Below are positions 9,785-57,589 of a stretch of DNA of 64,000 bases, piece after piece. This stretch comes from Macrostomum lignano. Lineage: Eukaryota. The DNA lies in NCBI GenBank assembly GCA_002269645.1, contig NIVC01001211.1:1-64000 (forward strand), in the 5' to 3' direction. The notes under the pieces are model-generated. The model did not search any database and was not told the DNA's origin. It saw only the letters and a list, made by a program, of their open reading frames with translations. Numbering within the stretch: position 1 is the first letter of the stretch; the number at the start of each line of letters is the position of its first letter. The position numbers and the translations under genes were made by a program.

Positions 9785-10067
9785 GCTTGTCTCTGCGTGC
9801 TTGTCTCTGCGTGCTTGTCTCTGCGTGCTTGTCTCTGCGTGCTTGTCTCTGCGTGCTTGTCTCTGCGTGCTTGTCTCTGCGTGCTTGTCTCTGCGTGCTT
9901 GTCTCTGCGTGCTTGTCTCTGCGTGCTTGTCTCTGCGTGCTTGTCTCTGCGTGCTTGTCTCTGCGTGCTTGTCTCTGCGTGCTTGTCTCTGCGTGCTTGT
10001 CTCTGCGTGCTTGTCTCTGCGTGCTTGTCTCTGCGTGCTTGTCTCTGCGTGCTTGTCTCTGCGTGCT
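9785..10067. repeat. 14-bp tandem repeat x20
   Basis: Unit gcttgtctctgcgt. Confidence 0.97.
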
Positions 10068-10747: not shown

Positions 10748-12840
10748 AACCTTTCCATTTTTACTTAATGAGACTGCAGTTGAATAACCAGCCTCTGATC
10801 GATCGGAAACATCTGATACCAAAACCGGCTCCAGTTCAGCAAGATCTCAATAAATAGCTCCAGTGTCCCACTCCGGCAGCGGCTCGCGGCTCTCACACAC
10901 GCGATCTTTAAGTCAGTCATGTGGCACGAGCTGCGAACGCTGCTGCTCCTGCTGGCCCTGCACGCCTGCAGCGGGTCATCCGTGCGCCTGGCTGTTGTGA
11001 GCGAAGCCGGAAGTCTCGCGGACAGTTCGGTCATCACCACAGCGGTGGACAAGCTGGTCAACGGAAACTGGAGGTATCCGGCATTCAAGACCAGTCCGAT
11101 GTCGCTGGAGCTGCTGCCGACTGCGGACTCAGTGGAGGCTGCGCAGAGAGGTAAAAACAGCTTGCGATACAAATGTATTGTAGAATTCTAAGAAAGAAAA
11201 TTATGTACTCGTACTTTGGTGACAATCAATAGCTAGCTGATTAGGTTCAACGACGACTTGCTTGCTTACCCGGAAAATCTCTTCTGAAACTTCAGTGTGT
11301 CGATCGACAGGTCTCAACGGCTTGGTCGTCGTCGGCTCTTGTCAGTTCGTCTCGGATGTGCTCAAAATCTCTGGCTCCCTACAATTACCGACAGTCGCAG
11401 TTCTCAGAGGCCTTTGTCGGCTACCCAGTGTGCCAGGTAAAACCCTTATTACCACAACCTATCTACTGACGCACACTTGCTTACATCACAGACAAGAATG
11501 AATCGCATGTCTTTACAGACTCAGCGATCGTGTCGAGTCCACTGGCGACCGACTTCTTGAGGGCGACCGCAGAAGCAATGGACCGAGTCTCCGCTAATCT
11601 GGTCGCTGTCCTTCACGACAGACAACAGGGTGCGCATGGCTTCCTCAAGACTACTGCTCCATCTGTAAGTTGACAGCAATGCCTTCCTCAACCATGGTGG
11701 CCAACACTCGTCATTGCAGACCACTTGCTGCTTGAGCAGCTTCAGCAACTGCTCTCGGAGAAGAGAATCGCCAGCGTGATGTTTCAGTTCGACGAATCGG
11801 CCACCAATTTGACACAAATCCTGCAAAACAGCGTCAAGGCTCAGATTCGATACTGTGTGGTCGTCTGCGAGCCCGACAAGATCCCACTCGTCTTCGAGCA
11901 GGTGAGCTCAGGTACAAATTCTTTCGCGCAATCGATTAGGGCTTAATATCATTTGGTTGTCATTCCAGGCTCGGAACACAGCCACACTGCAGATCAACTA
12001 CTTCTGGACTGTGATTGACACAGGAATTTCGCCAAGAACTATCGAGACTCTGATCCCCGCGAATGAGTCTGCGAACATCCTCTTGATCCGTGAGTCGGCA
12101 GTTCTTCTCAAAGAAATGGACTGCTCTGTAGATCTCGGAGTCGTGTATCCGGACTGCCAGTTCAGCAAGCGTTCGGTGAGGAACTCGTTCCCTGCAAACT
12201 TCTTCTGCGATGGAGCTTAGGCGCTGGCGATCTATCTGCAGTAGACCCTGAATATCCCTCAGATGCTGGAGCTGAAGGCGTTGGAGGCCGTGCTGTCATT
12301 CGCCAGAGCTACACAGAGCCTGCTGGACAGCTCCGACCTCGGCCTGACCGCCAGCAACGCGTCGTGTCGGCCGCTGCAGCCGTGGTCGGCGGGTCCCGCA
12401 GTGGCTGCGCAGCTGAAGCAGGTTGGAGTTCAGTTGCCTGTCTGACTCAGATTCTTAGCGACATGTGCGATTTGTGGTTGAGTTTGCTTTACACCGGCAT
12501 ACTTAATAGCTGAATCAGAGAACAGAAAGCAAAGCTTAATTGCCCTAATAGAAGCACGGCTTCTTGTAATTAATGCTTAACCCCATATTTCCTGGCATGC
12601 CTCATAGCAGCGGCTCAGCCCAGCCAACGGAAGTGCGGGGCACCGGAGCGACTACTTCCTGGAGATGCTGGGCCTGCTCAGCAACCCGGACGCAGTCGCG
12701 GAACTCGTGCCAAGCGGCCGGTTTATCGTCGAGAACGGCAGCCTTGTAGTGACCTTCGAGTACAAGGAGCGCGAGCTGCTGTTTCCCAACACCTTCGTGG
12801 ACTTCAAGGGAGCTCGACTGCGGGTCTGCGCGCCGCCGGT
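10748..12840 (+). other. ~2.1 kb duplicated block (upstream flank plus ATD exons and introns), near-identical to 24126-26208
   Basis: Shared sequence from aacctttccatttttac to gcgccgccg|gt, with only scattered SNPs and small indels. Confidence 0.95.
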
Positions 12841-15362
12841 AAGGGCTTTCTTTTCAGCGAAATATGTAACTTTTGCCTCGTTTCTCGAATTTACTTGCAA
12901 TCAAATATCTCTTTTGGTGCAGATCTTAAATAATAATAATTGATTACCCATGCCCCAATGGTCAAGCGACAGCTCAGCCGCAGCTATTGCGCGGCGCCTC
13001 TGAATGCTGCGTACGGCTGTTCAGTCCAAGGACTCTCAATCGCTACTCACCCTCAATTATCCCAGCTAATGTTGGTACCCATTTTTCAGCTTTGTGAACT
13101 GAAGCAATGCAGAGTTATGTTTTATTGTTCATGCTCAAAGACAAATTGTTTCGAGCGGGTCGAGAATCGAATTCCCGACCTTTCAGTCATGAGTCAGACG
13201 CTCTCCCAATGGGCTACAACCCCCCTGAAGACGCTGAGGTTGTCTGATGAAGCTTAATTTTGTTTTAAATTGTGCTTGGAGTAATGAAGTAGTGTTCGAT
13301 TCATACAGTTGTGCAAACAGTAAAACGCTGGAAATGACTTAATTCATATAATGAAGCAAAACTGGCATGATTTAATTATCTTGTCTGCATGCTAAGCTGA
13401 TACTCTGCATGAACCAATCCAGTTTCCACCTTACACGGTCTACGAGAACTACACATTTGGCAGAGCTTCTGGACACTCGGTCGAAATGCTTAGCTACTTT
13501 ACCAGGCACCTCAATTTTACGTAAGCCATATTATTTTTCATCAGTCATCTCTACATGAAAATATGCTTCATTTTTTATGCCTCAATTTGAAGGTACGACC
13601 TGTTCTCTCCGCCGGATAACCAGTTCGGGGCACCTGTGGAGGGCTCACCCTACTTTACTGGCTGCATCGGCATGCTGCAGAAAAGAGTGAGCGCAGTGAA
13701 CATACGAGCGTATGTTCACTTCCAAATGAATTCAACACACTGAATGACTGAATCTGTTTCTGTCTTTCAGCAAGCGGATTTCGCGATGCTGTTCGCTACT
13801 ACTACTTTCCGCCATAAAGTAGTCGACTACTCGGATGAGTACCAGTTCTCGTCTAACACCATCCTAGTGAAAATGCCTCCACCAGAGTCCAAGCTGTGGA
13901 ATGTGTTCACGCCGCTCTCCTGGGACTCTTGGCTGCTCATTATTGCTATGTTCGTCATTGTTCCAGTCGTTATCTTCATTTTCGCCAAGCTCAGTCCCTT
14001 TAGCGCCTGGACTTTGGGCTTGCCTTATGCGTTTTCTGACGAAGTCTGGCTAAAGGAATACGTCTGGTCGGTCATTGGCAGCTTCTTGCAGCAGGGCCAG
14101 GACTTTTACCCGTTCTCGATGAGTCCTCGAACTGTCATGGCGTTCTGGTGGATGCTCACAGTAGTCATTTTTGGAGCATATACAGGTGGTTAAGCTAGGT
14201 TGTTTTATCAAATCTAATGCTTATGACTGCAGTTGATCAAATGTTAGTGCGTTTTCTATCCCTTTCCTTCAGGGGACCTCACGGCCAAGCTTGCTGTGAC
14301 GGTGGCCAAGTACCCGATCGAGAGCTTGGAGGATCTGATCGCCAGGCCGCACTACAAGGCCATGGTTGCCCAGGGCACCAACATCTACGGCTCAATCATG
14401 CTGGCGACGGAAGGTCCCTTGACTATGCTACGCAAACAGATGGAGCTTGTTGACACAATGGCCACCTGCGCCGAGACTGTGAGTTTGAGTGTCATGGTTT
14501 TAGATTGATTTACATTCGATGAAGTCAACAAAGCCTGAGGCTCTCAGTCAGGTCTGAAAAAGCACTTCACCGAACTTTCCCTCAGCTCCTCAAGCCGGAC
14601 GCGAGCCCGTACCTGGTGTGCGTCTCAGACCAGAGCAGCAATTCTTATTACGCCAGCGCATTCTGCAAGCAGGTTTACCAAGCCAAAAATTTCTTCAACT
14701 TTTACTACTTGGCTATGACGTTTCCACAGGATGTCTACTACCTTCCAGCATTTGACTTTCTGTAAGTTTCATATTCTTCATTATCCTTTAATGTTCTTGA
14801 ATATAGCTACCTTCAGCTGTTAAATTGAATTGAAGCCATCTCTACTAGACTTTGGTTATATTACATTTGGTTATATTTTATTTATTTTATATTTTGGTTA
14901 TATTTTATTACACGTATAGTGCCAGGTGAAAAAAAACTAACTGAGCTTTGCAGCCATAATAATTTTACGTTTTTTTCGGCTTCAAATCCCCACCAGCGAC
15001 AACCAAACTTCAAAACCCAGCACGACATTCCACAACCAAACCTCGAACAACAGAATAACACTCCACAACCGAACCTCGAACCAGAACATGTAAAGTCACA
15101 GCAAAAACTCGAACCCTACAGACTGCAGCGCGGCAAGGAGAGCGGCTTCGTCGATGTGGTGACTCGCAAGTTCATTCCTTCGACAAGCGATTGCAACGTC
15201 AACACGGCCGCCGCTGAGGCCGCAGCCATCCCACTGGAGGGTGTGGGTGGCGCCTACATCGTCAGTCTGTCGCTCTACCTGTGCGGCGGTGTCATCCTGC
15301 TGATCGAGCTGTTCTGGGTGGTCAGGCTGCAGAGGGACCCGCTCGATATGCCCGGATACTGA
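10919..15362 (+). CDS. iGluR/IR-like receptor copy 2, apparently intact, multi-exon
   Basis: MWHELRTLLLLLALHACSGS signal, then ATD exons. QADFAMLFATTTFRHKVVDYS; WSVIGSFLQQG; AYTGDLTAKL; ends ...DPLDMPGY*. Splice phases are consistent throughout. Confidence 0.93.
12931..13225 (-). mobile_element. tRNA-derived CORE-like SINE, copy 1 (intron of receptor copy 2)
   Basis: Homologous to 17832, 27246 and 46744. The minus strand starts with a tRNA-like head (A-box-like and B-box-like attcgattc) and ends in a taatcaatta(tta)n tail. Confidence 0.8.
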
Positions 15363-16396
15363 TGGCATCGGCCAGCCGGGCGAACCATGTACTATTGGAA
15401 TAACTGCAGTCTAAATATAACTTTGAGCCGTTCTTGCTAGGACCAAACCAATTACTGTTGTTTCACGGTGTATCACTCGCCTTCTATTAAATTTTATTTT
15501 AGGGCTTAATTCTGCTGGAATGTCATTGGAGAGACAGAAGAACTACAATTTAATCATTCAATCGGATGATTTGCTGCCTTTATGCAATTACGACGTTCGC
15601 ATGAAGCTATCCTGTGTTTGATCGGAGGTCCTATCTCTCCAATGTACTTTTTCTGTACGGAGATTTTTAGTCCGGATTTTTTTAAAATCAAGACTTTCCG
15701 TGGTAGACCCAAATTTGATGCAGACAAAGAAAAAAATTATTTAGAGAATAGTGCTTGGAGCTAAGAGCCTTTTCCGGGTTGCACTTTTATAGCTGTGGAT
15801 TTTCTTTTATTATGTACGAAAGTACCTAAAATTGATGGAGCACGTGAAGAAAAGTTATATTGTACGCTAGTATACTGAAACAACTTTTATTTTCAATCGC
15901 ACTTGAGAAACATTTTTGAAGCACCGGTTTGTTGCCATGCCTTGCTAGCTAAGCCTGAGAAGGCAGCAGTGCTTCTTTTAGGTCGTAGCCGCTGCAACCT
16001 AAGACCTATAGTTGTTGTTTCCTATCTATAACTTTATGGACTTTATGATTCTCCAATCCCTAACACAAAGATCAGTAGCTATTAGAACACTAATCCTATC
16101 CAAGTACACAATAGAAATATACATTTCTGCAAATATTTTCTGCAACTTCCATTATGCAGCAAGTGAACCAAATTGATCTGGAGGCATCTTTCAACTCATT
16201 TCTTCCTCACTGAATCAGGCAAAACCAAATTGACCCGTCTATTTTGCTGTTAATTGGAGTTAAACCTAAAGAAGATTCGAGTAGCGTTGGAGAAGGGAAG
16301 CGCGGTAGCAACCCCAAACCCAAAAAGAACAAGAAAAAACATGAAGCATGAAAGGTGACAGGCAGAAGAAAATCACCGCGCCTCACAGAGCACCGT

Positions 16397-16760
16397 TCAC
16401 GCACCGCCGAAGTTGCACTTCCAGTTGATCAGCGACGCGGTCGCTAAGGCAACGCTAACGCAGCTTTCCACAGGCCAAGGCTGGATGCCCGTAGAACCGC
16501 AGCAGGAAGAGTAGCAGATGCCGATGCAGCTTCCAGGCGCAAGGCATGTGAAAGGCTCGGAAGCTGATGTTGTGCTTGAGTGCTGCCAGAGTGGCAGTTC
16601 GCAGCAGGGCCATGATGGCCGCGTTGCCAGTTGCACCGTTGTTGAGGCAGTCCACCGCCGCTCTGTTGTCAATGTAGAGGGCGACCCGGCTGTTCTCGAG
16701 CTGCTCCTTGAACATGATGATGGGCATCAGCGGCAGCGCTGCTTCCTTCGAGTTACCATT
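16397..16760 (-). mobile_element. DIRS/Ngaro-type (tyrosine-recombinase) retrotransposon relic, RNase H fragment
   Basis: KEAALPLMPIIMFKEQLENSRVALYIDNRAAVDCLNNGATGNAAIMALLRTATLAALKHNISFRAFHMP matches the DIRS1 RNase H pattern (DN-AV...N.G...M.LLR......NI..RA.H.P) from recall. Confidence 0.7.
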
Positions 16761-16894
16761 TTAGAAAGAACGCACGCAACGCGACACATGGCGGGGCAGA
16801 GGAGGGGGTTTAAAACTGGTTAATTAGTGACTAGGCAAGACCAGTCACGAACCAAAACATTTTCGGTTCTGAAACGGTACTCAGACAGTTTGAG

Positions 16895-17030
16895 TCTGTA
16901 CTCAAATGAGTACAGACAGCAGGATGTGCAATGAAACTAAAATTGTTCATGAGTACAGACAGCAGAATGAGCAATGGAACTGGAATTGTTCATGAGTAGA
17001 GACAGCAGAATGAGCAATGGAGTTAGAATT
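16895..17030. repeat. Short imperfect ~42-bp tandem repeat
   Basis: atgagta(c/g)agacagcagaatgagcaatgga recurs about three times. Confidence 0.7.
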
Positions 17031-17831
17031 TTTCTGTCTATACAAATTTTCTTTGCTTTGAAGCAGTCTGCTGACGGAAGAGATTTGCAGACAGGCTGAT
17101 GCGCGATCTGCAGCTGCAGAAACTGCAGCCTGACTTCCAGCAAGCCGCCGAACAGCTTCAGGAAGTAGTTCAGACCCACTGGGAGCTGGGCTGGCCACCA
17201 GTGCTGAACCGGCAGCTACGGGAGGTCCTGTAAGCAGGTTTCCGCCAACAACAATAACCCCTATACCTACAGCCACTTCCTCTCGATAGGAAAAGGGCAG
17301 TCCAGTCGCAGACCAGTGGCTTGTGGACTTGGCCTTGGCTTTTCGGTGAAGGTGGTTTTTGAGAAATCAAAATATCATCAATTGTAGCTGGAGCTAAGAG
17401 GAAGAGATCGCAAACAACATGAAGGTCGGGCATGGCTCTGGGAAGACATTCTTCTTATAAAGCAGCAGGCGGTGCTGGAGACATGTAACCAGTTGAGCTT
17501 GCAATTGACTCAGTTATAGTACTTCTAAGGCCTCAGGCATTTTGGGCATTAAATGTTGAAGACTTGTGTATGAGGGTGGTGAGCAACACAAAAATAAGCA
17601 AATACAGACGCATTCGAATGACGCGAAAACCTATTACGACTAGATTTTGAACAGGTCATCGGTGTCCTACCTCGTCACAGTTTGGCAATCTCGTGTTTTG
17701 TAAAGCGCCTGATGCGATTTAAAACCCTTATGCTTAGGTACAGCATAAATTAATGATAACTAACTAATTGCCAAAGTGCAACCGACTCTAGGTAGTAACC
17801 GATCTAATAACCTCTAGTAACCGACTCTAGT

Positions 17832-18082
17832 AATGGGCAGATGTGCAACCGACAGCTCAGCCGCAGCTATTGCGTGGCGCATCTGAAGGCTGCGTACGGC
17901 TGTTCAGTCCAAGGACTGGGGATCGCCAAACACATTGTCAATTACCCCAGCTGGGCAAAATGGAAGCAATGCAGAGTGAAGTGTCTTGCTCAAGAACACA
18001 AATTGTTCCAAGTGAGATCAGGAATCGAACCCCGACCTTCAAGTCGTGAGTCCGACGCTCTGACCACTGGGCCACTCCCCTT
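17832..18082 (-). mobile_element. tRNA-derived CORE-like SINE, copy 2
   Basis: Minus strand: ggcccagtggtcagagcgtcggactcacgacttgaaggtcggggttcgattcc (A and B boxes), followed by the shared body. Confidence 0.85.
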
Positions 18083-18748
18083 ACAGCATGAAGAGCACGT
18101 TAAAATTTCACATCTTCGAATTCGTTCAAGTTGTGAGCCAGCAAAAGTGGCTAACAAGATTCGAAAAAGTGAAATGAAGTTCGAAACAAATGAAGTTTCA
18201 GGCTTGTCAAAGTGACTGACATTGCGAAGTTTCGAGTTTAGAAAGTTTATTTAGAAGTTTTGAGCATCTTTAATTTTGAGCTTCTGAAACTCCTCTCTTT
18301 ATTTAGCATGGCTTGCCTGCTCCTGGCGAGACTGTTGCTATGCCGCTGAGTGAAGAGCAACTTCAGCTACAGAAGTCAGTGCAAGCCACTCAGATATTAA
18401 GACATTGAAATCCACAGACCAAGTCTAATTAAAAGTTTAGTGAAAGCATTTTGAGCGAATGGCTTCAGGCTAAGCTGCTGGGCCATCTGTGTATTTAAGT
18501 AATGTAGAGAATGCTTAATTAAAATTTAATCACCACCACCATATCTGCACATGAGTTTCATATAAACGTATGCTTCTTCAAAACTAAGATATGCATTTTG
18601 GATCATGCGATTGAAACAAGCTGCACTTTTAATAAAACAATATTTTTATCTGAAATAAACATTTTCGGCTATAAAAATGACTGTTAGTTTCAACCAGTCC
18701 TGTGCATTAATAACCGGAGTGCATCGCTGAGTTTTCAAACCAGAGTAG

Positions 18749-21325
18749 TCAAATCTGCAGCAGCATTCGCACTTCACGGAGATACAGCCAAGTCTCGCAC
18801 CACCAGGTCATATAGCTGGTATTTGCCGTCTCCCGCACAGGAAAAATCCCGTTCGGGTTGGAGTGGTTGCAGTCTCGAAACCACCAGCCTCCTTTTCCAT
18901 ACCTGTTTGTGCATGACCCTGGGTTGCTTTCGTCATTGTCCCTGTCTATTGTGGAAAACCGCATTCCTGAGTTTTTCTGCAGTTCATCATAGTTCAAACT
19001 GGACCTGCTCTTCAGCATCTCTCGGTACGTCATCCGATACCCAGTGCTGGCATCTCCCACCTGGAATCCCGCGTACTCCGCATGCAGCTCAGAGCCGTTC
19101 CAGAGCTTCATCTCCAATCTGAAAGTGACGCCGCCCTGGCTCAGCAAGTGGATGGTGGAGAGGCCTGTGGGAAGAAATTAAGCGGCAGAGGCTGGGTCAC
19201 TTCTGCTTGGTCAGGCATTTTAGTGACACACCTGTAAAACAGACGAAAACGAACATAAATTGTATGGCTACTGTCCTTCGAATCGGAGCTTTCACTGGAT
19301 CACAGGAGAATGTAAATTGCCTTGGTTGGTTTAAGTTCGTGATCGTATTTACATGTTGAATAGGGTAGTAAACCTTGCTGCATTCTCAGCGGCTGGCTGC
19401 AACGAGGCGGGATGGGAAAGAGAGGAAGGGAGAAGGATCAGGTTGCCAGGCGCCAGTGCAGCCAAATTTATCAGCTTTGTTATGAAGCAGACGCTTTATC
19501 TCTGTTAGCAGAGCTGCGAACGCGAAGCGGCCGCTCACCGATCCAGAAGTCAGTGCCGTCACCGAAGCCAGTCTCGTACTCAGTCCAGCCTCGTTGGAAA
19601 CTCACTCTGCCGGTGAGTCGCTGCTGAATCTTTACGAAGCAGCGGCCGTCTCGCTGAACTTGAAGCGCGTAAGAAGAGTCAGCGGCGGCGCATGACTGCG
19701 GACTCGAGCAGCTCGCACTTGCCGACGCCTTCATTCTCCATGATAAAGTTGTCTGGACCGACTCGGATCGGCACTGGTCAGCAACCAGAGACGTCACCCG
19801 CCACCTCAGGTGTCGCCACAAATCCGCGGGCTCATTCAGCACCGCCGATCTGAAACTCAGCGGAGTTTTTAGATTGCAATACAACACGAAAATACGCGTA
19901 ACCTCTGAAAAAAATAATTAAAGCAATTCTTGAGGGCCACAAAAAAGGTCAACCATTTCAGTTTTCTTAAGACGAATGCTTTTCACTGTTATATTCCAAA
20001 AAAAATTCATTTGAAATGAAATGAACTGGTTGACATGAATTTTGAATTTGAAAAGACCCATTGAAACGGGGTCCTTAGGGTCTGTGAGACATCAGGGCAA
20101 CTGGGCAAATAAAACACTCAGAATTTTAAAGAACTGTCGTGAGGTAAAGTGAATTCTGTTTCTGTTTCTCCAAGCAATTATCAAACCTGAGTTCGTCGCA
20201 CAGCCCCGAGCTTCCGCAGAGCAGCCGCAGCTGAGCGGACTTCCAGTCTGTCGACACCATCAGCGGACCGACCTCGAACCGAGAACTCAACGAGCTCACC
20301 GATCTCTCAGCAGTCCACAGCCGCATAAAATCGACCGATCGAGGCGACAGGTCGGCCAGCTGAGTCCTCACAGCATCGCGTGTGGCCTCATCTTGCAGCA
20401 CCACATCCAGCTTCAGGTAGTGCATGTCTCGGCTATAGTCATACCTGACTGACTCGCTGCTCAAGCTGGAGATGTTGTGGCACAGCAGAGGCTCGATGAG
20501 GAAGTGGCCCTTCATGTCGAGTCTCTGGTGCACTCGGACTGAGCAGTTCTCGAGATTGACGGAGCGGATGAACCGAAGCTGTCGGCAATTCGACACATTT
20601 GCAAATCTTTGTCTGCCGAATTCCAAGTCGAAGAAGCTGCTGTTTTGCAGCAGGACGTGTCTCTGAACTTCATAGCAAGAGCCGTTCGAAATGATAGAAG
20701 CTGACAGCCTAACTTTTTCAAGGGCCTCGCCGGGCGAACTTCTAAAGTTGGCATTCTGCTCTGGCTGGATTTCTAATGAACTCAGACTTTGCATTCGAGG
20801 CACATTTGCCAGTCTCAAGTTGCTTGCAGCTTGGCACACACTGCTGCGGGCCCTCTTCTCAATTCGCAGTCTCAGGGTGGCGATTGGTTCATCTGGAGTC
20901 CACAGGATGTCAGAAACCCGGATTAATGAGCTGAAGTCGGCTGAGACGCTGATGTTGGTGACCGTGGCGAAGCTCACAGACCTCGGTGACAGATGCCGCA
21001 GTTGACGCTGAGCATCTGCGAGCATCCCAGCATCCCTCATCAATACAGGAACGCTGAAGTACAGCTGCTGGGTGATGAAGTCGAATCGGGGAACAATGCC
21101 TCTCAGGCTGTCCGTCACGCACATGAGCGGCTCGACTGCCAAGTGCGGACCGTCGCTCGCTCCCGTGTCGTGCACGAACAGCGCGCAGCCGTTCACGCTG
21201 AGCTGCGCCACGAAGCGGAGCCGCGGAGAGTCAGCGGGAGCGCACTGGGAGACCTGGCCGGCTGCCAGCGAGCAGAGCAGCAAAGCAACAAAAATGAAGC
21301 CCTTTTTCCAATTCCAGTCACGCAT
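18749..21325 (-). CDS. Secreted fibrinogen-related protein (FReD) with a large unrecognised N-terminal region; exons 21325-20187, 19849-19539, 19164-18749 (~620 aa)
   Basis: Signal peptide FIFVALLLCSLAAG. Fibrinogen C motifs: IQQR..G.VSFQRGWTEYETGFG..DFWIGL..IH, FSTIDRDND, C.....GGWWF..C..SNPNG. Phase-matched junctions: CTC AG|gt..ag|A TCG and ATC G|gt..ag|GC CTC. Confidence 0.85.
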
Positions 21326-21859
21326 TTTTCTTAAGCTTTATTTAACATTAGCAAGGCGGTGACAAGCAGGCAAAGCCAGTGCACTAATATATATAGCACT
21401 AATCTATACAAAATCTACCTCGCATTATTCTGATACTTGTACAGACAGAATAAGCCAGGTTAGGCAGAATAACAACTATTTACAAGCCCAAATTAAAATA
21501 AGATAATCTGTTTAGATGTCAACTCTGTTTTATGCACCTGGTCTATTCAATATGCCTATTCATATTTCTTTTTATTTAAAATCTTCACGAAACAAGAAGC
21601 AGTGCAGTGTCGAGATTCTGACCGTCGGAAACTGCATGGTGTTGTGTTGAGATAGTCAGACTGATTTTTGTGGGTACACACGAACTTAGACCAAGTTGGC
21701 CTTTCGACTGGTATATTTATACTTATATATTTATCTAGTTGCGACAGATTAACATCGGCAAACAGATGTACATAGCAGATGTACATATCTGCAAAACAGC
21801 TACACAACATTCACTCTCCCTCACGAACGAGTTGCCTTGTCGACGAAATATTCGAAAAT

Positions 21860-22020
21860 CGATTACTGGGGGAATGGCTTACTGGGGGAATTGCTGAGAT
21901 CTCAAGTCTTGGGGGGAATTGCTAAGATGTTAAGGCTAAGGTTAGAAGCTACATGTAGTTTATTTAAAAAATTTTAGTACATTCTTTGTTTGCTCCCCAA
22001 CGGGGGGCGTAAATTGCTAG
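21860..22020. repeat. Degenerate interspersed repeat (ggggaattgctgagatgtcaagg motif), related to 23200-23750
   Basis: Recurrent gaattgct(g/a)agat and taggg/ttagg motifs. Confidence 0.55.
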
Positions 22021-22539
22021 TGGCTACTAAATCTTGACCCGAGCGGTATTCAGAGAGGCTGAATAGTCAAACCCAGATAAACAAGATCTTGTTGCCAATT
22101 CTTTTGATCAACAGAAACTTTCACGCCAGATTCAGCTTTGAACTCGCAGATGATCCAGGGGCCTATTTAGCATTTTGTTGCTTGTCTATAAGCCATGTCG
22201 ATCCTGAAATCGATCCGGCATCCTACTTGCTGTTGCAGGCGAGAGTTAAAAAACTTGATACGAGCCTGACAATTGTCAATTCAGGACTCACAAGATGCAG
22301 ATTGTGCCCAAGATAAGAGACAAAGAGAGAAAGAAAAAGAAAAGGAAGGGAAAAGCTGCCAATATCCATTGCATAGATCTTCAGGAATTGGACAATCCGC
22401 AGACGAATTGAACTTTGTTTTTGCAGCTCCTGGTGTCGATCGTCACGAGTAACTTCCTCCAAGCCCCTCTACGGAGACTTACAACCTGCCTTTACGCTGA
22501 CGACACGAGGGCGACACACCAATATGAACCAGTGCCGCT

Positions 22540-23200
22540 CTATGTCGGTATTGAGACGGTGCTGATGAGGTGGCACTTCAAGCAGGTCCAAAGCAGGGGA
22601 TCAGAAAACAATCGTGCAGTAGCAAGACAGGAATCTGGATCCTGTCTGAACCAGGCCCTAACTTCTGTCGGCCTTCTGCCTGAGCAGGAAGCCGATTCCC
22701 TTAGGACGCGATGCATCTGTGTGCGAGGCTGTGTGTACTGATCATGGTAGATTAGTTTAGGCGTGTTTGCAAGGCGATTTAGGGCCTTCTCAAAGGAGTC
22801 TAGCTGTTCTTGGCCCCATTTAAACATTCTCTCTGATGGCCTGTTACTCCGGCTATTTCTGGAGTAAAAGTTCCAACTTGGATCACAAGACCAACTATTA
22901 CTCAAAGATCCGTGATATTTCTAGGCTTTGGAAAGCCGCTGATTGTTTCACAATCTCTGGATCAATGCAGTCAGTATCCATCGGCCGACAAATAAAGTCC
23001 AAAATACTGCGTACACTGTGTGCAGATTGCGTGCTACGGAAATCAAATTATTGTATTTAAGCAATTCTGCTGTCCTCCCACCGTCGAAGAAGTTTTCGAA
23101 CTGCTTGGACATGCGATCCTCTTTCTGGGCTCAAAATCAAATAGGCATCAACCATGTGCCTAACGTACTGCAACTGCTCAGGTCTTGAAAAGTATCATCC
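22540..23200 (-). mobile_element. Degenerate Ty3/gypsy pol fragment (RT C-terminus, linker, RNase H start)
   Basis: Across frameshifts and stops: KPRNITDL*VIVGLVIQVGTFTPEIA, FKWGQEQLDSFEKALNRLANTPKLIYHD, TDASRPKGIGFLLRQ, LVQTGSRFL. Confidence 0.85.
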
Positions 23201-23750
23201 ACCTGGAGATTGTGGAATGCGGCATTTCGAACATGGAGGGAATCGCTAAGGTGTCAAACGTTCATAGTCGAATTGCTGAATTCTTGGGGGCTCAGAGGGA
23301 ATTCATGAAATGTCAAGGTTCATTGAGAATTGCCGAAATGCTGTGACTCGGCAGGGTTAGTCATAGGTTTACGCTAGGGTTCAACCATAAAAGAATCATA
23401 TGAAATTGCCAACATGCCCGAGCTCATAGGGGTTGGGAGTGAAATGCTGAGTTGTTAAGGCTCATGTGTGGAATCGCTAAGATTTCAAAAGCTCAAGGGC
23501 AAATTGGTGAAATTCTTAGGCTCAGGGGAATTGTTGAAACTCGGCAGGGTTAGGGCTAGGATTATTGGTTCAATTATGAAATAATCGCCCCTGTCAACCA
23601 TAAAAGATTCATGGGGGTTTGCTTAGATGTCAAAGCTCTTACAGGGGAGTGCTTAAGATTAAAGGCTCGTGGGTGATTGCTGAATGCTGTGGCTCATTGG
23701 AGAATTGCTGAGATGTCAAGGCGAGAATCGCTGAAATTGTGACTTGTGTT
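23200..23750. repeat. Degenerate tandem-like repeat (gaattgctgagatgtcaaggctc units)
   Basis: Imperfect recurring units; the same motif occurs at 21860-22020. Confidence 0.6.
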
Positions 23751-24296
23751 GCTCAGATTATATGAACCAAAGCTCACAAAGGATCTGATATCTTAGGCTA
23801 GATAGCTGGTGCTTTTTGCATTCAAAATCGTTTGCCCCTTGGTAGCTCGTACTTAACACTGGTTAATCAACAAGGTCATATCCTACTTGAAGTTCTTTCA
23901 AACATTTTATTTCTGTTTTTGTTGACTCCCCAATGATTAATAGGTTAACTATTACTTTGCGATGGATATCTAATTTCATTAGTGCATCGGCAGATATTGC
24001 AAAAAAAGGCAAAGCGCAAAGCCCATTATCGATAATTGGACAGCTCAGGTGGCAAACTGGCTGAAATTCCAGCCGGGCGCTGCCCCATCGCCAAGTCAAT
24101 GCAGCATCACATTCTGATTGAAGGTAACCTTTCCATTTTTACTTAATGAGACTGCAGTTGAATAACCAGCCTCTGATCGATCGGAAACATCTGATACCAA
24201 AACCGGATTCAGTTCAGTAAGATCTCAATAAATAGCTCCAGTGTCCCACTCCGGCAGCGGCTCGCGGCTCTCACACACGCGATCTTTAAGTCAGTC

Positions 24297-27200
24297 ATGT
24301 GGCACGAGCTGCGAACGCTGCTGCTCCTGCTGGCCCTGCACGCCTGCAGCGGGTCATCCGTGCGCCTGGCTGTTGTAAGCGAAGCCGGAAGTCTCGCGGA
24401 CAGTTCGATCATCACCACAGCGGTGGACAAGCTGGTCAACGGAAACTGGAGGTATCCGGCATTCAAGACCAGTCCGATGTCGCTGGAGCTGCTGCCGACT
24501 GCGGACTCAGTGGAGGCTGCGCAGAGAGGTAAAAACAGCTTGAGATACAAATTTATTGTAGAATTCTAAGAAAGAAAATTATGTACTTTGGTGACAATCA
24601 ATAGCTGATTAGGTTCAACGACGACTTGCTTGCTTACCCGGAAAATCTCTTCTGAAACTTCAGTGTGTCGATCGACAGGTCTCAACGGCTTGGTCGTCGT
24701 CGGCTCTTGTCAGTTCGTCTCGGATGTGCTCAAAATCTCTGGCTCCCTACAATTACCGACAGTCGCAGTTCTCAGAGGCCTTTGTCGGCTACCCAGTGTG
24801 CCAGGTAAAACCCTTATTACCACAACCTATCTACTGACGCACACTTGCTTACATCACAGACAAGAATGAATCGCATATCTTTACAGACTCAGCGATCGTG
24901 TCGAGTCCACTGGCGACCGACTTCTTGAGGGCGACCGCAGAAGCAATGGACCGAGTCTCCGCTAATCTGGTCGCTGTCCTTCACGACAGACAACAGGGTG
25001 CGCATGGCTTCCTAAAGACTACTGCTCCATCTGTAAGTTGACAGCAATGCCTTCCTCAACCATGGTGGCTAACACTCGTCATTGCAGACCACTTGCTGCT
25101 TGAGCAGCTTCAGCAACTGCTCTCGGAGAAGAGAATCGCCAGCGTGATGTTTCAGTTCGACGAATGGGCCACCAATTTGACCCAAATCCTGCAAAACAGC
25201 GTCAAGGCTCAGATTCGATACTGTGTGGTCGTCTGCGAGCCCGACAAGATCCCACTCGTCTTCGAGCAGGTGAGCTCAGGTACAAATTCTTTCGCGCAAT
25301 CGATTAGGGCTTAATATCATTTGGTTGTCATTCCAGGCTCGGAACACAGCCACACTGCAGATCAACTACTTCTGGACTGTGATTGACACAGGAATTTCGC
25401 CAAGAACTATCGAGACTCTGATCCCCGCGAATGAGTCTGCGAACATCCTCTTGATCCGTGAGTCGACAGTTCTTCTCAAAGAAATGGACTGCTCTGTAGA
25501 TCTCGGAGTCGTGTATCCGGACTGCCAGTTCAGCAAGCGTTCGGTGAGGAACTCGTTCCCTGCAAACTTCTTCTGCGATGGAGCTTAGGCGCTGGCGATC
25601 TATCTGCAGTAGACCCTGAACATCCCTCAGATGCTGGAGCTGAAGGCGTTGGAGGCCGTGCTGTCATTCGCCAGAGCTACACAGAGCCTGCTGGACAGCT
25701 CCGACCTCGGCCTGACCGCCAGCAACGCGTCGTGTCGGCCGCTGCAGCCGTGGTCGGCGGGTCCCGCAGTGGCTGCGCAGCTGAAGCAGGTTGGAGTTCA
25801 GTTGCCTGTCTGACTCAGATTCTTAGCGACATGTGCAATTTGTGGTTGAGTTTGCTTTACACCGGCATACTTAATAGCTGAATCAGAGAACAGAAAGCAA
25901 AGCTTAATTGCCCTAATAGAAGCACGGCTTCTTGTAATTAATGCTTAACCCCATATTTCCTGGCATGCCTCATAGCAGCGGCTCAGCCCAGCCAACGGAA
26001 GTGCGGGGCACCGGAGCGACTACTTCCTGGAGATGCTGGGCCTGCTCAGCAACCCGGACGCAGTCGCGGAACTCGTGCCAAGCGGCCGGTTTATCGTCGA
26101 GAACGGCAGCCTTGTAGTGACCTTCGAGTACAAGGAGCGCGAGCTGCTGTTTCCCAACACCTTCGTGGACTTCAAGGGAGCTCGACTGCGGGTCTGCGCG
26201 CCGCCGGTTAGTCACGAATAGCTGAAGACTTGATGTTTTACTTCATAATAAGAAATTGGGATTACGCTCGTAAAATGGTATGAAGGGCATTGCTTGTTTC
26301 TTCAGATAAGAAAAAGTAACAAATAATTATTTCGGGACGTTATTTATGTTAGTGATAAAGTAGTTGTAACATTTTAATAATAAACCTTATCTAATAACGA
26401 GTCCCATTTTCCCAACCAGTTCCCGCCTTTCACCAGGTACAGCAACTACACCTTTGGCACGGCTTCTGGCCACTCGGTGGATATGGTCAACTATTATGCC
26501 TCGCATCTGAATTTTTCGTATGTCTGAATCAGATTTGCATTGAGCCTCAACTCATTCTCCGTTGCATTATAGAGTACAGAAACTTATTGACCTTCATTGC
26601 GGCAGGTATGACATTTTCTCCCCACCGGATATCCAGTTCGGAGCGCCGGTCGAAGGATCGCCCTACTTCAGCGGTTGCATCGGCATGCTGCAGAGAGGAG
26701 TGAGGACAGCGCCTGCTTAATGATAATTTATGTTATAAAGTACAGTTTGCTCGAATTGACAGTCTGAAACTCTGTTCTCGTTGCCTTCTTCCCAGGAAGC
26801 CGAGTTTGCCATGCCGTTTGCCATCACCAACATTCGCTACCAAGTGATCGACTACTCAGAGGACTACATGTTCTCCGCCAACACCATTCTGGTGAAGCGG
26901 CCGCCATCAGAGTCCAAGCTGTGGAATGTGTTCACGCCGCTGGCCTGGGACTCCTGGCTGCTCATTCTCGGCATGCTCGTCTTCGTTCCCATCATCGTGT
27001 TTGTGCTCGCCAGCTGCAATCCGTTCTCCGGGTGGAATCTACGCATCTCGTACGCGTTTGCCGATGAGGTGTGGCTGAAGGAGTACATCTGGTCAGTGAT
27101 TGGCAGCTTCCTGCAGCAGGGCCAGGACTTCTATCCCTTCGCTATGAGCCCCCGCACTGTTCTGGCCTTCTGGTGGATGCTCACCGTTATTCTCTATGGC

Positions 27201-28570
27201 GCATACACAGGTGAGGCTGACGTCTGCATTGTCTTTTCAATACGTAATATTAATTGATTACACCTGCCTGGGCAGGTGTGCAACCGACAGCTCAGCCGCA
27301 GCTATTGCGCGGCGCATCTGAAGGCTGAGTACAGCTGTTCAGTTCAAGGACTGAGGGATTGCCACACACTTTCAATTACCCCAGCTAATGCTGGCACCCA
27401 TTTTACAGCTGGGTGAACTGAAGCATTGCAGAGTTAAGCGTCTAGCTCAAGGACACAAATTGTTCCGGGTGGATCGAGAATCGAACCCCTGACCTTTCGG
27501 TCGTGAGTCCGATGTTCTAGCCATTAGACTATAACCCCCTAGTAGGCTACAACCCAAAGTTTTGTCTTGATAGCCGTGAGTTATCGGCGTCATTTTACTG
27601 TTGTTTTTCTCTTACCGGACAGGGGACCTCACGGCCAAGCTGGCTGTGACGGTGGCCGAGTACCCGATCCAAAGCTTGGAAGACCTGGTCTCCATGCCGC
27701 ACTACAAGGCCATGGTTGCCCGGGGCACCAACATCTACGCGACTATCATGCTGGCAACTGACGGACCCATGGCTTTGCTGCGCAGGCAGATGGTTGTCGT
27801 AGACACAATGACTACCTGCGCTGAAACCGTGAGCTGATGCCCTGGTTCTTTGTTGGCTGTTCTGTTGTATAAAATGCATGGGGTCCTAATTAGCTATAGA
27901 TATCATTGATGCCGACCATTCCAGCTGCTGATTAAGGACGCCGACCCGTACATGGTGTGCATCTCGGACAAGAGCAGCAACTCGTTCTATGCCAGCGCAT
28001 TCTGCAGCCAGGTGTACCAGGCCACCAGCCTTTTTAACTATTACTACCAGGCGATGACGTTTCCCAGAGATGCCTATTACCTGCCGGCGTTCGACTTGCT
28101 GTACGTTTTCTTCATTCCGCATTCCTTCTGGTTTTTATGCAATGCAAACAAACTGTACACATTCTGTGCGAAGTGTGTCGTTGCAGAGAATGATACGCCG
28201 AAATTAAAACTTTGATCTGAAGTGCAAAGCGGGGGTTTATTGGGGCTGATACCTCCAAGAAGGCCAGAAAAGCGAAAACCTGTGAATTCTCAAAACCATT
28301 AAAGTAGCTGACTCCTCCCAACTCTGCAGTCTTCAGCGCGGCAAGGAGAGCGGCGTCGTGGATGTTGTGACTCGGAAGTACGTCCCGCAGAGCAACGACT
28401 GCGGCGGCAGCAACGCGGCTGCTCAGGCGGCGGCCATATCGCTGGAGGGTGTCGGAGGCGCCTACATCATCTGCCTGGGCCTGTACGTGTGCGGTGGGCT
28501 CGTCCTGCTGGTGGAGCTGCTCTGGGTGATGTGGCTCGGGAAGCAGCCACTGGACATGCCAGGATACTGA
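24297..28570 (+). CDS. iGluR/IR-like receptor copy 3, apparently intact, multi-exon
   Basis: ATD near-identical to copy 2. Distinct LBD (EAEFAMPFAITNIRYQVIDYS); WSVIGSFLQQG; AYTGDLTAKL; ends ...QPLDMPGY*. Confidence 0.93.
27246..27540 (-). mobile_element. tRNA-derived CORE-like SINE, copy 3 (intron of receptor copy 3)
   Basis: cccattttacagctgggtgaactgaagcattgcagagttaagcgtctagctcaaggacaca followed by gagaatcgaacccctgacc. Confidence 0.85.
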
Positions 28571-30214
28571 TGAGGGGCGCCGGAATCAATTAAGCTCAGG
28601 CTGGATTAATTCGTTTCAATCCAGTTTGCGATAAATAAACATTTGCGATGCTAATAGCTTGCACATTAGACTTACACAATGAAAATTCACAATTCGCAAT
28701 CAATAATTCGTTCACGTTGCAGTCGCAGCAACTCACTTTTAGAAGCTGAAATGTAAAAGTGGGCACCACGCTTTTTCGCTTACCTTAAGCTTCATTCTTT
28801 ACATGCAGTTTCCCCAGCCTTGCAGAATTCGGACTCGTTTCCGGCTTAGTAACTGCAGCGCTCGCATCCCCAAACGGACGTTGCTAGCTTTTGCTCAGAG
28901 CAGAATTCCAGTAAATAATATTAGTCCTCGTACACCGCACTCGTTCCACATCCGTGTCTCTCTCAAATGTATTGAATGCATTATAGCAATGTGGGAATGA
29001 TGAAGCCGAGAAAAACTCACCAAGGCGAAATGCTTTGCTTAGGCCGAACGCGACCCGAAATTTGATGCCATGTCAAAGATTTTCGATAAAAAATGAAAAC
29101 TCGCAAAAGCATTTGATCTGCACTGGCTGCATTTTACATCAGAAATGATTAATAAATAAAACATTCGCAACAGAGCTGTTGGTACAGGCGGAGAATGTAT
29201 TTGACCGCCAGTGCGGTGACATGGAAGACGCAACGAGTTCCAAAATGAAAAGCTAAAACAGGAGAGCAGCAAAGCTTTGTACAGAGTTCGGCAGCCCCAC
29301 AGCTCGCCAGCAATTTTGTTCGATTGGAGGTCGCGCACAGAGGAGCGCCAGAGATCGGAGCACAAAGGGACCGGCATGAGGAACTGCTCAGCACAGGTAC
29401 TACAGGTAGCAAACAATATTAGTGAGCGAAACTAAATAAAAAGTGTAATGATGCATAGCAGTGAGTACTGAGATCTACAAGCAGTAGCACGGATAGAGCA
29501 GAGCTTAGTTGCATAAAAATTGATTAGTAAAATGGTTAAAAAGTGTCAAATAAAAAACACAAAGGAAGCACATTGGACAAAAAGGACACAAACGAATGAT
29601 TTGATTTGGCCTAAAAAACTGGCCTGGAAGATGGAGTGCGGCCTGCGCACAGCAAACCCTTGAGATCTGCGGTGCCCGAGCTTGAGGCTGCTCAGGTCTC
29701 AGGTCAGCGATTTGCGGGGAAGTGCGGCAGGCCATGGCATCAGCCGCTGCCAGCTGCAAGGAGGTCAAAGGAGATTCGCAGCAGCAGGCTTGGCAGCGCG
29801 GACGACACGCCACAAGACGGCGACAAAAGTTCGCCGCAGGACAGAATGACAAGTAAAATGTAAAACAAGCCTTCAGTAGAATAGAAACAGCATTCAGCAG
29901 GTCTTTCAACGTAGTGAAAAGATTCTACGAGCTATTATGAAGTGAAGTGAGAGTAAAAATTTGTAAAACCACTCTGGCTTCGAGAATCAGTGAATAAGCC
30001 TATCATTGAATTTCTATTCAGACAGCGCGTCAGTAAGTTAATTCACTAATGAATTACAGCAGAGTAGCACCAGATTCGCCCTACAGTTTACAGCTGTTGT
30101 CCACATGAAACAGCTCCACATTCACCCCGGAGTCACCCAATAGTCACCACAGAGCTACCCCACAGTCCCACAGAGTCACTTGAAAGTCACATTTGAGCTG
30201 GCTTAGGGTCCCCG

Positions 30215-30636
30215 CACAGTCACTCCATAGTCCCCATAGAGTCACTCTATAGTCCCCATAGAGTCACTCTATAGTCCCCATAGAGTCACTCTATAGTCCC
30301 CATAGAGTCACTCTATAGTCCCCATAGAGTCACTCCAAGAGTCACTCCATAGTCCCCGTAGAGTCACTCCTTAGTCCCCGTAGAGTCACTCCTTAGTCCC
30401 CGTAGAGTCACTCCTTAGTCCCGTAGAGTCACTCCTTAGTCCCCATAGAGTCACTCTATAGTCCCCGTAGAGTCACTCCTTAGTCCCCGTAGAGTCACTC
30501 CTTAGTCCCCATAGAGTCACTCTATAGTCCCCGTAGAGTCACTCCATAGTCCCCGTAGAGTCACTCCATAGTCCCCGTAGAGTCACTCCATAGTCCCCGT
30601 AGAGTCACTTCATAGTCCCCGTAGAGTCACTTCATA
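30215..30636. repeat. 22-bp minisatellite directly 3' of the claudin stop
   Basis: Unit tagagtcactc(t/c)atagtcccc(a/g). Confidence 0.95.
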
Positions 30637-30672
30637 AGTCACCCAAGCCAGCCGCAGCGCAGATCCCTGAGG

Positions 30673-31455
30673 CTACACCAGGCTGTCCTCGGGCGGGGCC
30701 GGCCGCCGGGCCGCGGTGAACTTCTTGTCGATGCCGGAGGCCCCGGCCGCAAATTTGTCCGCAGTCTCGGCGTCGTCCTCGCCAATGAGCTGCTGCTGCT
30801 CGGCGAACAGCAGCTCCTCCTCGGACTTTCCAACAAAGCGGATGACGGTGAAGGCCAGCGCGAAGAAGCTGGCGAAGTTGGCGAAGCAGGCGCAGGCGTA
30901 GGAGAAGCCGAGCCGGTTGTAGTCCGGCCGCGGCATCCACCGCCGGTCGAGGCTGTTCAGGCCCACGAAGATGATCTGGACGAGGATGGCGCAGCTGGCC
31001 AGCAGGTGCATGGCGCCGCACAGCTTGAGCTGCTTGAGATTGGCCGGCAGCTCCTCGATGCGCCGCTTGGAGACGTAGCGGTGGCAGGCGAGGCGGCTGA
31101 CGATCACTGTGGCGATGATGAGGAAGATGAGGGTGAGGATGGACAGCATCTGCACAGCGTAGAACCAGGGCGGGTTCAGCCAGCTGCGGATGTAGTAGTA
31201 CTCGGGGTAGTAGATGTACCAGCAGCCGTAGTAGGCCTTGGACACATAGTCCTCGGGGTGCAGGTAGCCTTTGAAGCAGGCGGTCCACAGGCCGAGGCGG
31301 AGGAAGGTGCTCTCCATCTCCGGCTTCAGCTCGATCCAGTTGGGCGTCACGAAGGCCACAAAGTACAGGATGCAGGCCAGCACAGTGCAGACAAGCACGC
31401 AACGGAAGGCGAGGTCCCGAGGCAGGCGGGCCCCAAAGTTTGGTGCTGGTTGCAT
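30673..31455 (-). CDS. Invertebrate claudin-like tetraspan protein (PMP22/claudin family, Sinuous/Kune-like), single coding exon, 260 aa
   Basis: Four hydrophobic segments. ECL1 signature W...LGLW..C...C (TPNWI...LGLWTACFKG...YYGCW). NPPWFYAVQ motif. GC3-rich codons. C-terminus SLV. Confidence 0.9.
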   Translation of the reverse strand: MQPAPNFGARLPRDLAFRCVLVCTVLACILYFVAFVTPNWIELKPEMESTFLRLGLWTACFKGYLHPEDYVSKAYYGCWYIYYPEYYYIRSWLNPPWFYAVQMLSILTLIFLIIATVIVSRLACHRYVSKRRIEELPANLKQLKLCGAMHLLASCAILVQIIFVGLNSLDRRWMPRPDYNRLGFSYACACFANFASFFALAFTVIRFVGKSEEELLFAEQQQLIGEDDAETADKFAAGASGIDKKFTAARRPAPPEDSLV

Positions 31456-33993: not shown

Positions 33994-34151
33994 GCGCAAC
34001 CTTGGGAATCACTCGGCCATTTCTATTGGCAACACACACATGTAAGTTGCTATTGGCTGAGAGCAGTCACGTGACTACTATTCCATCCAATAGCAACTTA
34101 CATATGTGTGTGTTGCCAATAGAAATGGCCGGGTGAATCCCTAGGTTGCGC
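33994..34151. other. ~158-nt near-perfect inverted repeat (foldback/MITE-like or hairpin RNA)
   Basis: gcgcaacc..cggccatttctattggcaacacacacat..gtaagttgctattgg pairs with ccaatagcaacttac..atgtgtgtgttgccaatagaaatggccg..ggttgcgc. The centre contains agtcacgtgact. Confidence 0.9.
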
Positions 34152-37100: not shown

Positions 37101-38082
37101 AAAGAAGTAAAAAAACTATAGTTGTGTCATGTCCATCTGAACAGACAATTTTTTTGATTGATCATGATGAAAACCTCAATCTCACCCCAATCATTGCAAT
37201 TCCCTCATCCCAAAACCTGTTTTGTTCCTTCTCACCCCAATCCCAATAAACAGCCCCTTTAGAAACATTCAGACCTGCAGCCCATCAACTTTCTAATGAA
37301 GGCCTGTGAAGGCCAACAAAGAATAGAGATGAGAAAGATAAAAGCAGGAAAAAATGGAGTAAAAGCTCAGGGGGCCAGATGCAATGCTAGATCATCAAGA
37401 GCCTTGGGGGCCAGATTGGAAGGCTTTCGGGGCTGGATCTGGTCCTAGGCTAGAGGTTTCCAACCCTTGGACTATTTGAAATGGGGCTGGCCAATGGCCA
37501 TGATCTATATATATTATTTATTGAATTTATTTGAATATATTTATTACTTAATAATTAATTTAGAACAGCCTATAATTTATTTAGACCTTTGAATAATTAA
37601 TTCAAATAACAAACAAAATACATTGCTATACTGGCAATGAAAATTTTTAGCTCAATTATTTTTTTATTAATTAATTTAATAACTAGGAATTTACCTGTAT
37701 TTTATGTTTACAATTTTTTTCCTTTCTATTTTTGGTTGATTAGGTATCAGTAACTGTAGTGAAATTGTGGTTGAGCTGACTGAGGATAGATCTGTCACCT
37801 GCTTTGCCCAATAGCAGCTTGCCAGCCAAGGTGGATGTTAGGCGCAATTTTCACATATTGGCTGATATTGCAAATTTGCAACCAGGATAAGGTGTTAGTG
37901 TGTAATTCTAATGCTAATATTTGTGCTAATTTAGCACCTTAGCTTTGGATGAATAACCCTGGAGACAGGCACTATTGGCATGTTCTGGCCATGGGTAACA
38001 ATGCAGTGGCGGTGGCTGAGCTGAGCTCATTGAATTGCATGCCATGGCCAGTGCCAGTCTGTGCGCTGACGCCCCGGTGCTG

Positions 38083-57493: not shown

Positions 57494-57589
57494 CCGAAAT
57501 CATATGATAGCATAATATCACATGATAATTGGCGGCGCGCGTTTGCCCAGAATTATAAGCTCAAGACAGGCGCGAGCAACGCTGACAGC

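Follow-up and report, generated by a model that had tools for sequence, protein, structure and literature searches.

Ionotropic glutamate receptors (iGluRs) of the AMPA, kainate and delta types consist of an amino-terminal domain (ATD), the first part of the ligand-binding domain (LBD; S1), the membrane segments M1-M3, the second LBD part (S2) and M4, and iGluR ATDs guide subunit assembly. We analyzed four iGluR-like genes, copies 0-3, which lie head to tail on the + strand of a 64,000-nucleotide (nt) stretch of Macrostomum lignano DNA (positions 1 to 64,000 of contig NIVC01001211.1, assembly Mlig_3_7, GCA_002269645.1; hereafter the window). Copies 2 and 3 were found to be mosaics: their front halves are nearly identical, introns included, whereas their back halves diverged long ago. 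We attribute this structure to a single exchange, which was probably an ectopic gene conversion.

Similar to AMPA-, kainate- and delta-type receptors, copies 2 and 3 appear to show the full ATD-S1-M1-M3-S2-M4 layout. Lig_chan (PF00060, M1-M3 plus M4; E 7e-23 and 2e-21) and Lig_chan-Glu_bd (PF10613, S1/S2; E 4e-12 and 1e-12) both matched above the Pfam cut-off. The pore motif QQG is kept, as are the ligand-binding arginine (GluA2 R485; TTTFR and ITNIR) and an acidic residue at the E705 position, here aspartate (VSDQSS and ISDKSS). However, the closest solved relatives, GluA4, GluD1 and GluA2, are only about 25-30% identical (E ~1e-33, with alignment from the ATD to M4), the gating motif in all copies is the divergent variant AYTGDLTAKLAVT instead of SYTANLAAF, and the T480 position holds alanine. 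The pocket also differs between the two genes, with lysine in copy 2 and arginine in copy 3 at the Y450 position and leucine and proline, respectively, at the P478 position. The ANF_receptor match is weak (19.1 and 17.9 bits, under the Pfam cut-off of 25.4); by phmmer, residues 130-400 align with the GluA4 ATD. An exhaustive search returned about 10 further family clusters at 42-52% identity, and all 10 of the members looked up by name came from M. lignano. Copies 0-3 thus appear to belong to a Macrostomum-specific, divergent iGluR-like family that is confined to M. lignano among close relatives. Protostome chemosensory ionotropic receptors (IRs) are likewise a lineage-specific, tandem, fast-evolving iGluR-derived family with altered pocket residues. 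In contrast to the tuning IRs, which mostly lack an ATD, the genes described here appear to have a full one and keep the arginine and the acidic residue.

Copies 2 and 3 have clean GT-AG gene models with the same exon count (13) and the same intron phases. The genes of the array and the block shared by two of them are as follows.

1-756, + strand: copy 0, only the end of exon 11 and exons 12 and 13 of a further paralog, truncated by the contig start
4549-8882, + strand: copy 1, an older paralog, 57% identical to copies 2 and 3 in the ATD and 66-67% in the LBD and transmembrane (TM) half
10919-15362, + strand: copy 2 gene from ATG to stop, 13 exons, intact iGluR-like open reading frame (ORF) of 824 residues
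10919-11150, 11311-11436, 11519-11629, 11720-11901, 11969-12175, 12263-12421, 12611-12838, + strand: copy 2 exons 1-7
13423-13520, 13593-13686, 13771-14185, 14273-14478, 14586-14761, 15122-15362, + strand: copy 2 exons 8-13
24297-28570, + strand: copy 3 gene from ATG to stop, 13 exons, intact ORF of 824 residues
24297-24528, 24679-24804, 24887-24997, 25088-25269, 25337-25543, 25631-25789, 25979-26206, + strand: copy 3 exons 1-7
26420-26517, 26606-26699, 26796-27210, 27623-27828, 27925-28100, 28330-28570, + strand: copy 3 exons 8-13
10748-12840, + strand: near-identical block of copy 2, running from 171 nt upstream of the ATG through exons 1-7, with introns 1-6, to the GT of intron 7 (self-BLAST)
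24126-26208, + strand: its counterpart in copy 3 (self-BLAST)
12839-13422, + strand: copy 2 intron 7, 584 nt, phase 0, where non-homologous sequence begins past the block
26207-26419, + strand: intron 7 of copy 3, 213 nt, weakly similar to copy 1 intron 7 (71% over 59 nt)

An earlier note on this DNA had claimed that the two blocks are near-identical, introns and about 170 nt of upstream sequence included, and self-BLAST bore this out, with 98.806% identity across 2093 nt. In base-level alignment, both edges are sharp (from about 35-45% to about 100% identity in 50-nt windows), and the left one lies 171 nt upstream of the ATG (10919 and 24297). Within the block, the copies differ by 15 substitutions (9 transitions and 6 transversions), of which 5 fall in 1245 exonic nt and 10 in 848 non-coding nt, and by two indels of 6 and 4 nt, both in intron 1. 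Three of the five exonic differences are non-synonymous. Past the block, introns 7-12 could not be aligned, and the exons show 73-84% nucleotide and 72% amino-acid identity; the residues LFATTTFR and PFAITNIR that the note had contrasted were confirmed.

The sliding-identity and substitution-rate comparison that the note had proposed revealed a sharp step. By the Nei-Gojobori method, the synonymous (dS) and non-synonymous (dN) divergences between copies 2 and 3 are 0.006 and 0.003 in exons 1-7 but 0.97 and 0.16 in exons 8-13 (omega, dN/dS, 0.17), and fourfold-degenerate sites differ at 2 of 229 positions in the front half and at 78 of 153 in the back half. Purifying selection acts on the back halves of both genes. 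Trees that took family members as outgroups place copies 2 and 3 as sisters, for the ATD (exons 5-7) and for the LBD/TM half alike; the topologies are congruent and only the depth differs (0.00 vs 0.27). This shows an old sister pair of duplicates in which the front half was overwritten later. The note had expected incongruent ATD and LBD trees and would have taken congruent ones as a refutation; however, a mosaic of this kind itself yields congruent topologies, so congruence does not refute it. Nor is the suggestion supported that the sensing module diversified once the ATD was shared, since the LBD divergence (dS ~1, omega 0.17) predates the front-half exchange.

The right edge of the block is the GT of the intron 7 donor (CCG/GTAAGG in copy 2 vs CCG/GTTAGT in copy 3). 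Copy 1 already differs within the last 7 nt of exon 7, as is normal between paralogs, so the true endpoint lies at most about 3 nt from the donor. The note was thus right that identity stops at the donor past RVCAPP but not that this is the exact ATD/LBD border. Exon 7 codes not only for ATD and linker but also for the first LBD beta-strand, where ARLRVCAPP aligns with RTVVVTTIM of GluA4, and by this alignment the switch would lie about 10 residues inside S1. The left edge was also considered as a splice donor. Protein record P0001 implies GAAG/GT at 24123/24124, spliced to an acceptor 2 nt before the ATG, so that the block would run from +3 of a 5′ intron; however, the gene prediction behind this is doubtful, and copy 2 has AG instead of GT there.

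Past the right edge, copy 2 carries a short interspersed nuclear element (SINE). The note had placed it about 90 nt beyond the boundary and in copy 2 only, which holds for intron 7 but not for the whole gene, since intron 10 of copy 3 holds another element of the family.

12927-13236, - strand: tRNA-derived SINE in copy 2 intron 7, with the (ATT)n tail on the left and the reverse-complemented tRNA-like head on the right
27245-27546, - strand: SINE of the same family in copy 3 intron 10

Four copies of this (ATT)n-tailed element of about 300 nt are present in the window (the two above, 17834-18072 and 46755-47071); ARAGORN and Rfam, run on the window, did not recognize it and gave no matches at all. 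The SINE was rejected as the cause of the breakpoint because it starts about 87 nt beyond the edge and its family copies are only 78-82% alike, hence older.

Through the fibrinogen-related gene between copies 2 and 3, we reached a second contig, NIVC01003610.1, which is 96-99% identical to window positions 9866-30536. It holds its own copy 2 (c2B) and copy 3 (c3B), with block edges exactly as in the window copies (c2A and c3A). Inside the block, the contigs diverge by 0.6-1.1%, which fits the published divergence of the M. lignano subgenomes (1.1-2.2%); we read them as homeologs. The c2B ORF is intact. The exons of c3B differ from those of c3A solely by two 1-nt deletions in exon 4, homologous to window positions 25166 and 25181; both fall exactly on positions diagnostic between copies 2 and 3, so they look like noise that cross-mapped paralog reads left in the polished consensus. 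Intron 12 of copy 2 (14762-15121) contains a tandem repeat, read as ITLHNQTSNNR units, which is expanded in the homeolog (885 nt vs 360 nt).

Both junction types recur in M. lignano proteins of UniProt that differ slightly from the window. P0006, of the copy-2 type, joins block exons 6-7 to copy 2 exons 8-9 and has a D-to-E change in common with c2B. P0001 and P0002 (A0A1I8JJF5 and A0A1I8FU98), of the copy-3 type, join exon 7 to copy 3 exons 8-13 with identical junctions. The N- and C-terminal extensions of these two are antisense translations of the fibrinogen-related (20204-21314) and claudin-like (29303-31206) genes and hence annotation artefacts. Our initial view of P0001 and P0002 as RNA-derived models was withdrawn: the NCBI annotation of Mlig_3_7 has no gene at copy 3, so the A0A1I8 models stem from another annotation, which we take to be that of the 2015 ML2 assembly. 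Look-ups of the junction-spanning ORFs (12665-12943 and 26033-26221) and of P0001 and P0002 gave no match.

The second contig allowed the exchange to be placed in time. In a four-way alignment of the blocks of c2A, c3A, c2B and c3B, at least 10 substitutions and a 6-nt indel follow the orthology pattern (c2A=c2B, c3A=c3B), whereas only one clean site, 11928, and one site in a messy indel group the copies by contig, as concerted evolution predicts.

10829, 10831, 10840, 11165, 11175, 11509, 11702, 12098, 12253, 12469: orthology-pattern substitutions

Substitution levels in the block are 0.72% for c2A-c3A, 0.63% for c3A-c3B, 1.06% for c2A-c2B and 1.79% for c2B-c3B. By the site patterns, paralogs within a genome copy do not group together ahead of orthologs, as they would under concerted evolution. 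Because orthology-pattern sites dominate, the exchange predates the duplication that gave rise to the two contigs, and the blocks have not been re-homogenized since. There was a single exchange before the genome duplication and plain divergence afterwards, so that an ongoing homogenization of the assembly module is not supported.

The ATD-wide tract is not the only sign of exchange in the family. Two exon-sized patches of reduced divergence were detected in the array.

6291-6443, + strand: exon 6 patch of copy 1, compared with copies 2 and 3 (12263-12421 and 25631-25789), 90% nucleotide identity, dS 0.30
14273-14478, + strand: exon 11 patch of copy 2, compared with copy 3 exon 11 (27623-27828), dS 0.48

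For exon 6, the dS of 0.30 contrasts with 1-2.6 in neighboring exons (fourfold sites 6/28 vs 57/85, p=5e-5), and identity collapses at the donor GT; this indicates an older, exon-limited exchange of copy 1 with copies 2 and 3. For exon 11, dS is 0.48 vs about 1-1.8 in neighboring exons (p=0.004) and identity collapses at the exon ends, which may reflect an older exchange between copies 2 and 3. Moreover, the family member P0008 matches copy 1 at 100% across 68 exon 7 residues and at 94% and 86% in exons 6 and 5, respectively, but identity drops to 35-58% for exons 1-4 and to 43% for exon 8; the right edge of this tract falls about 8 codons short of the exon end. The array therefore swaps pieces repeatedly and in differing registers, the ATD-wide tract being the largest and youngest. 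Comparing copy 1 with copies 2 and 3, we found that the ATD evolves faster than the LBD/TM half (dN 0.38 vs 0.23). Given the 57% identity of the copy 1 ATD, the spread of the family at 42-52%, the patchwork of P0008, which shares only exons 5-7 with copy 1, and the exon-sized patches, the ATD is not a constant region, contrary to what the earlier note had put forward.

The block is a patch of high identity, silent and intronic sites included, with old divergence on both sides, which is the signature of gene conversion and agrees with that part of the earlier note. The alternative in the note, unequal crossover, fails: a single one is ruled out by a patch with two sharp ends, as the identity reaches only 171 nt beyond the ATG on the upstream side, and the flank and the intergenic sequence show no homology. 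We infer a homology-guided mechanism and consider one ectopic gene conversion between the two genes to be the probable event. Copies 2 and 3 arose long ago as tandem duplicates (dS ~1) of a Macrostomum-specific, divergent iGluR-like gene. Shortly before the recent genome duplication, one non-reciprocal exchange, by ectopic gene conversion or by gap repair with the neighboring paralog as template, would have replaced a 5′ stretch of 2.09 kb in one copy with the sequence of the other, from 171 nt upstream of the ATG to the end of exon 7, introns 1-6 included. The replacement would have been in perfect register: both genes retain 13 exons, matching phases and intact ORFs, and nothing remains of the overwritten ATD. 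The tract would end at exon 7/intron 7 because alignable sequence stops there, with heterology presumably blocking heteroduplex formation or branch migration; since then, the two blocks have drifted apart without further homogenization. Leftover ATD exons were not found elsewhere in the window by tblastn, and the in-register replacement, the lack of an ATD remnant and the exon-limited tracts elsewhere in the family together favor homology-guided conversion or gap repair. Several observations weigh against this proposal. The right end of the tract is at the close of exon homology, but the left end is in non-coding sequence where no flank homology was detected, and homology may not have guided the exchange at that end, at least. 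If the two ATDs were once as diverged as the LBD halves, the tract crossed six heterologous introns, a path that homologous recombination takes with low efficiency. Under a uniform model, the chance of a breakpoint that close to the donor, within about 3 nt, is only about 1-2%, and the tract shared by P0008 and copy 1 stops before the exon end, so that stopping at exon edges is no rule. Donor and recipient copies are indistinguishable, and both contigs come from one assembly project with known errors. Given the left end without homology and the six introns crossed, a non-homologous copy-and-paste stays a serious rival, although we consider it rather unlikely. The 2.09-kb segment would have replaced or newly supplied the 5′ half of the neighbor through template switching or end joining, as in microhomology-mediated break-induced replication (MMBIR), fork stalling and template switching (FoSTeS) or non-homologous end joining (NHEJ); this would be exon shuffling at the DNA level, retained as the junction happened to keep the intron 7 donor. 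Sharp edges without flanking homology, a left edge in non-coding DNA, introns inside the tract and short junctional identities (at the two block ends, GGT in copy 3 and AA in copy 2) are all in line with it. However, a microhomology of 2-3 nt is not significant, exact register and the total loss of recipient exons 1-7 without remnants would be needed, and other tracts in the family are exon-limited, as homology-dependent conversion predicts. Two further sources of the block were rejected: a reverse-transcribed splicing intermediate is far-fetched, since introns 1-6 are retained, and Helitron- or terminal inverted repeat (TIR)-type capture lacks the terminal signatures.

The earlier note had named a misassembly or a haplotype chimera as what would overturn its reading, and the second block could in principle stem from a misjoin, from chimerism between haplotypes or subgenomes or from polishing: Mlig_3_7 has been reported to contain errors, 93% of read pairs multi-map, and the 1-nt deletions of c3B at diagnostic positions resemble consensus noise from cross-mapping. 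However, the four junctions recur with the same edges on a second contig, NIVC01003610.1, whose sequence differs by 0.6-1.8% in the block and where the diagnostic sites are orthology-consistent, and both junction types occur in protein records that differ from the window, which makes misassembly very unlikely. Moreover, block-to-flank junctions do not arise in an assembly unless reads contain them, and the 9 transitions and 6 transversions in the block do not look like homopolymer noise. We therefore find an artefact scarcely credible and take the mosaic structure to be real. The remaining explanation, in the spirit of the earlier note, is that recurrent conversion or selection keeps the ATD identical as the constant assembly module of mix-and-match receptors with variable LBDs. 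Two intact genes indeed have the same ATD and different LBD/pore halves, both mosaics are kept on both homeologous contigs, and the role of iGluR ATDs in assembly is established. Nevertheless, the blocks have not been re-homogenized since the homeologs split (at least 10 orthology sites vs 1-2), three of the five exonic differences in the block are non-synonymous, and the ATD, just 57% identical in copy 1, is the faster-evolving half. Additionally, tblastn found neither extra ATD blocks nor orphan LBD cassettes within the window, other paralogs have different pieces in common, and the RNA-seq-based annotation has no gene at these loci. The ongoing part of this explanation is largely refuted, and as a whole we judge it to be very improbable. 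A single ectopic conversion between old duplicates thus remains our preferred account.

We can only guess at a chemosensory role for copies 2 and 3. The RNA-seq-based NCBI annotation of Mlig_3_7 calls no gene at c3A, c2B or c3B; therefore, expression of copies 2 and 3 may be low or restricted. By analogy with iGluRs in general, the shared ATD could let copy 2 and copy 3 subunits co-assemble. It is conceivable, although quite improbable, that the natural domain swap was fixed and kept on both homeologs because same-ATD subunits that co-assemble are useful, as a minimal two-member constant/variable design, and that exchange delimited by exon-intron borders is a rule in the family. If so, tracts ending at exon borders, through heterology-blocked conversion or a splicing-linked intermediate, would swap modules cleanly. 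What the locus offers is a clean and datable case of probable partial gene conversion that gave two intact receptor genes differing only behind the ATD. Copies 2 and 3 form a natural chimera pair for probing the role of the ATD in assembly within a divergent iGluR family, and a private tandem iGluR-like family riddled with exchange tracts matters for annotation and for phylogenies.

Other features surround the array. Exon 4 of copy 1 (5731-5914) shows a frame shift near 5808, a 2-nt-deletion-type difference relative to copy 2, which reflects either a pseudogene or an assembly indel. Closely upstream of copy 2 lies a perfect 14-nt × 20 array (9785-10067), and between copies 2 and 3 two ORF fragments (16458-16760 and 22543-22920, both on the - strand) resemble retrotransposon RNase H or pol by eye, with no match in Pfam. 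The following neighboring genes were identified.

18752-21325, - strand: fibrinogen-related gene between copies 2 and 3, 621 residues in NCBI
30673-31455, - strand: claudin/PMP22-like gene
45270-50105, - strand: two CAP/SCP-domain genes
38044-52666+, + strand: RNB-domain (DIS3-like) exoribonuclease whose introns hold tandem arrays

An AT-rich island of 6.4 kb (31400-37800; GC 25-39% vs about 48% around it) lacks long ORFs, contains a single 48-nt inverted repeat (33994-34041 and 34104-34151) and may be part of a large intron. Minisatellites are very dense in the window (38652-44895, 56712-64000 and elsewhere), including a 33-nt × 102 array (57589-60891), a 30-nt × 62 array (42992-44895) and further arrays of 41 nt × 19, 13 nt × 64, 21 nt × 34-42 and 17 nt × 40.

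Overall, the locus can be set beside several known designs. In the protocadherin, UGT1A and insect Gr39a/Gr28b clusters, shared exons are present once and are spliced to alternatives. Copies 2 and 3 resemble them in the notion of joining a common module to alternative ones; however, the block here is physically present in each gene, and only a single pair has it in common. The Drosophila Ir75c/b/a array was considered as an analogue of shared 5′ modules and set aside, since exons are shared in the published case only through read-through transcripts with 3′ extensions, not as shared coding modules. No domain-limited gene conversion in IRs or iGluRs turned up in a literature search. The locus resembles interlocus gene conversion, with its textbook cases in globin, opsin, MHC/KIR and chemoreceptor arrays, where a patch of near-identity likewise stands amid old divergence, the genes stay intact and in place, and one array holds tracts of several ages. 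What sets copies 2 and 3 apart is a 2.09-kb tract that crosses six introns, ends within about 3 nt of a splice donor near a domain border and has been static since before the genome duplication, instead of being recurrently renewed. We conclude that the copy 2/copy 3 mosaic adds a new case of a familiar process, from an unstudied gene family, and is no new kind of genetic system.

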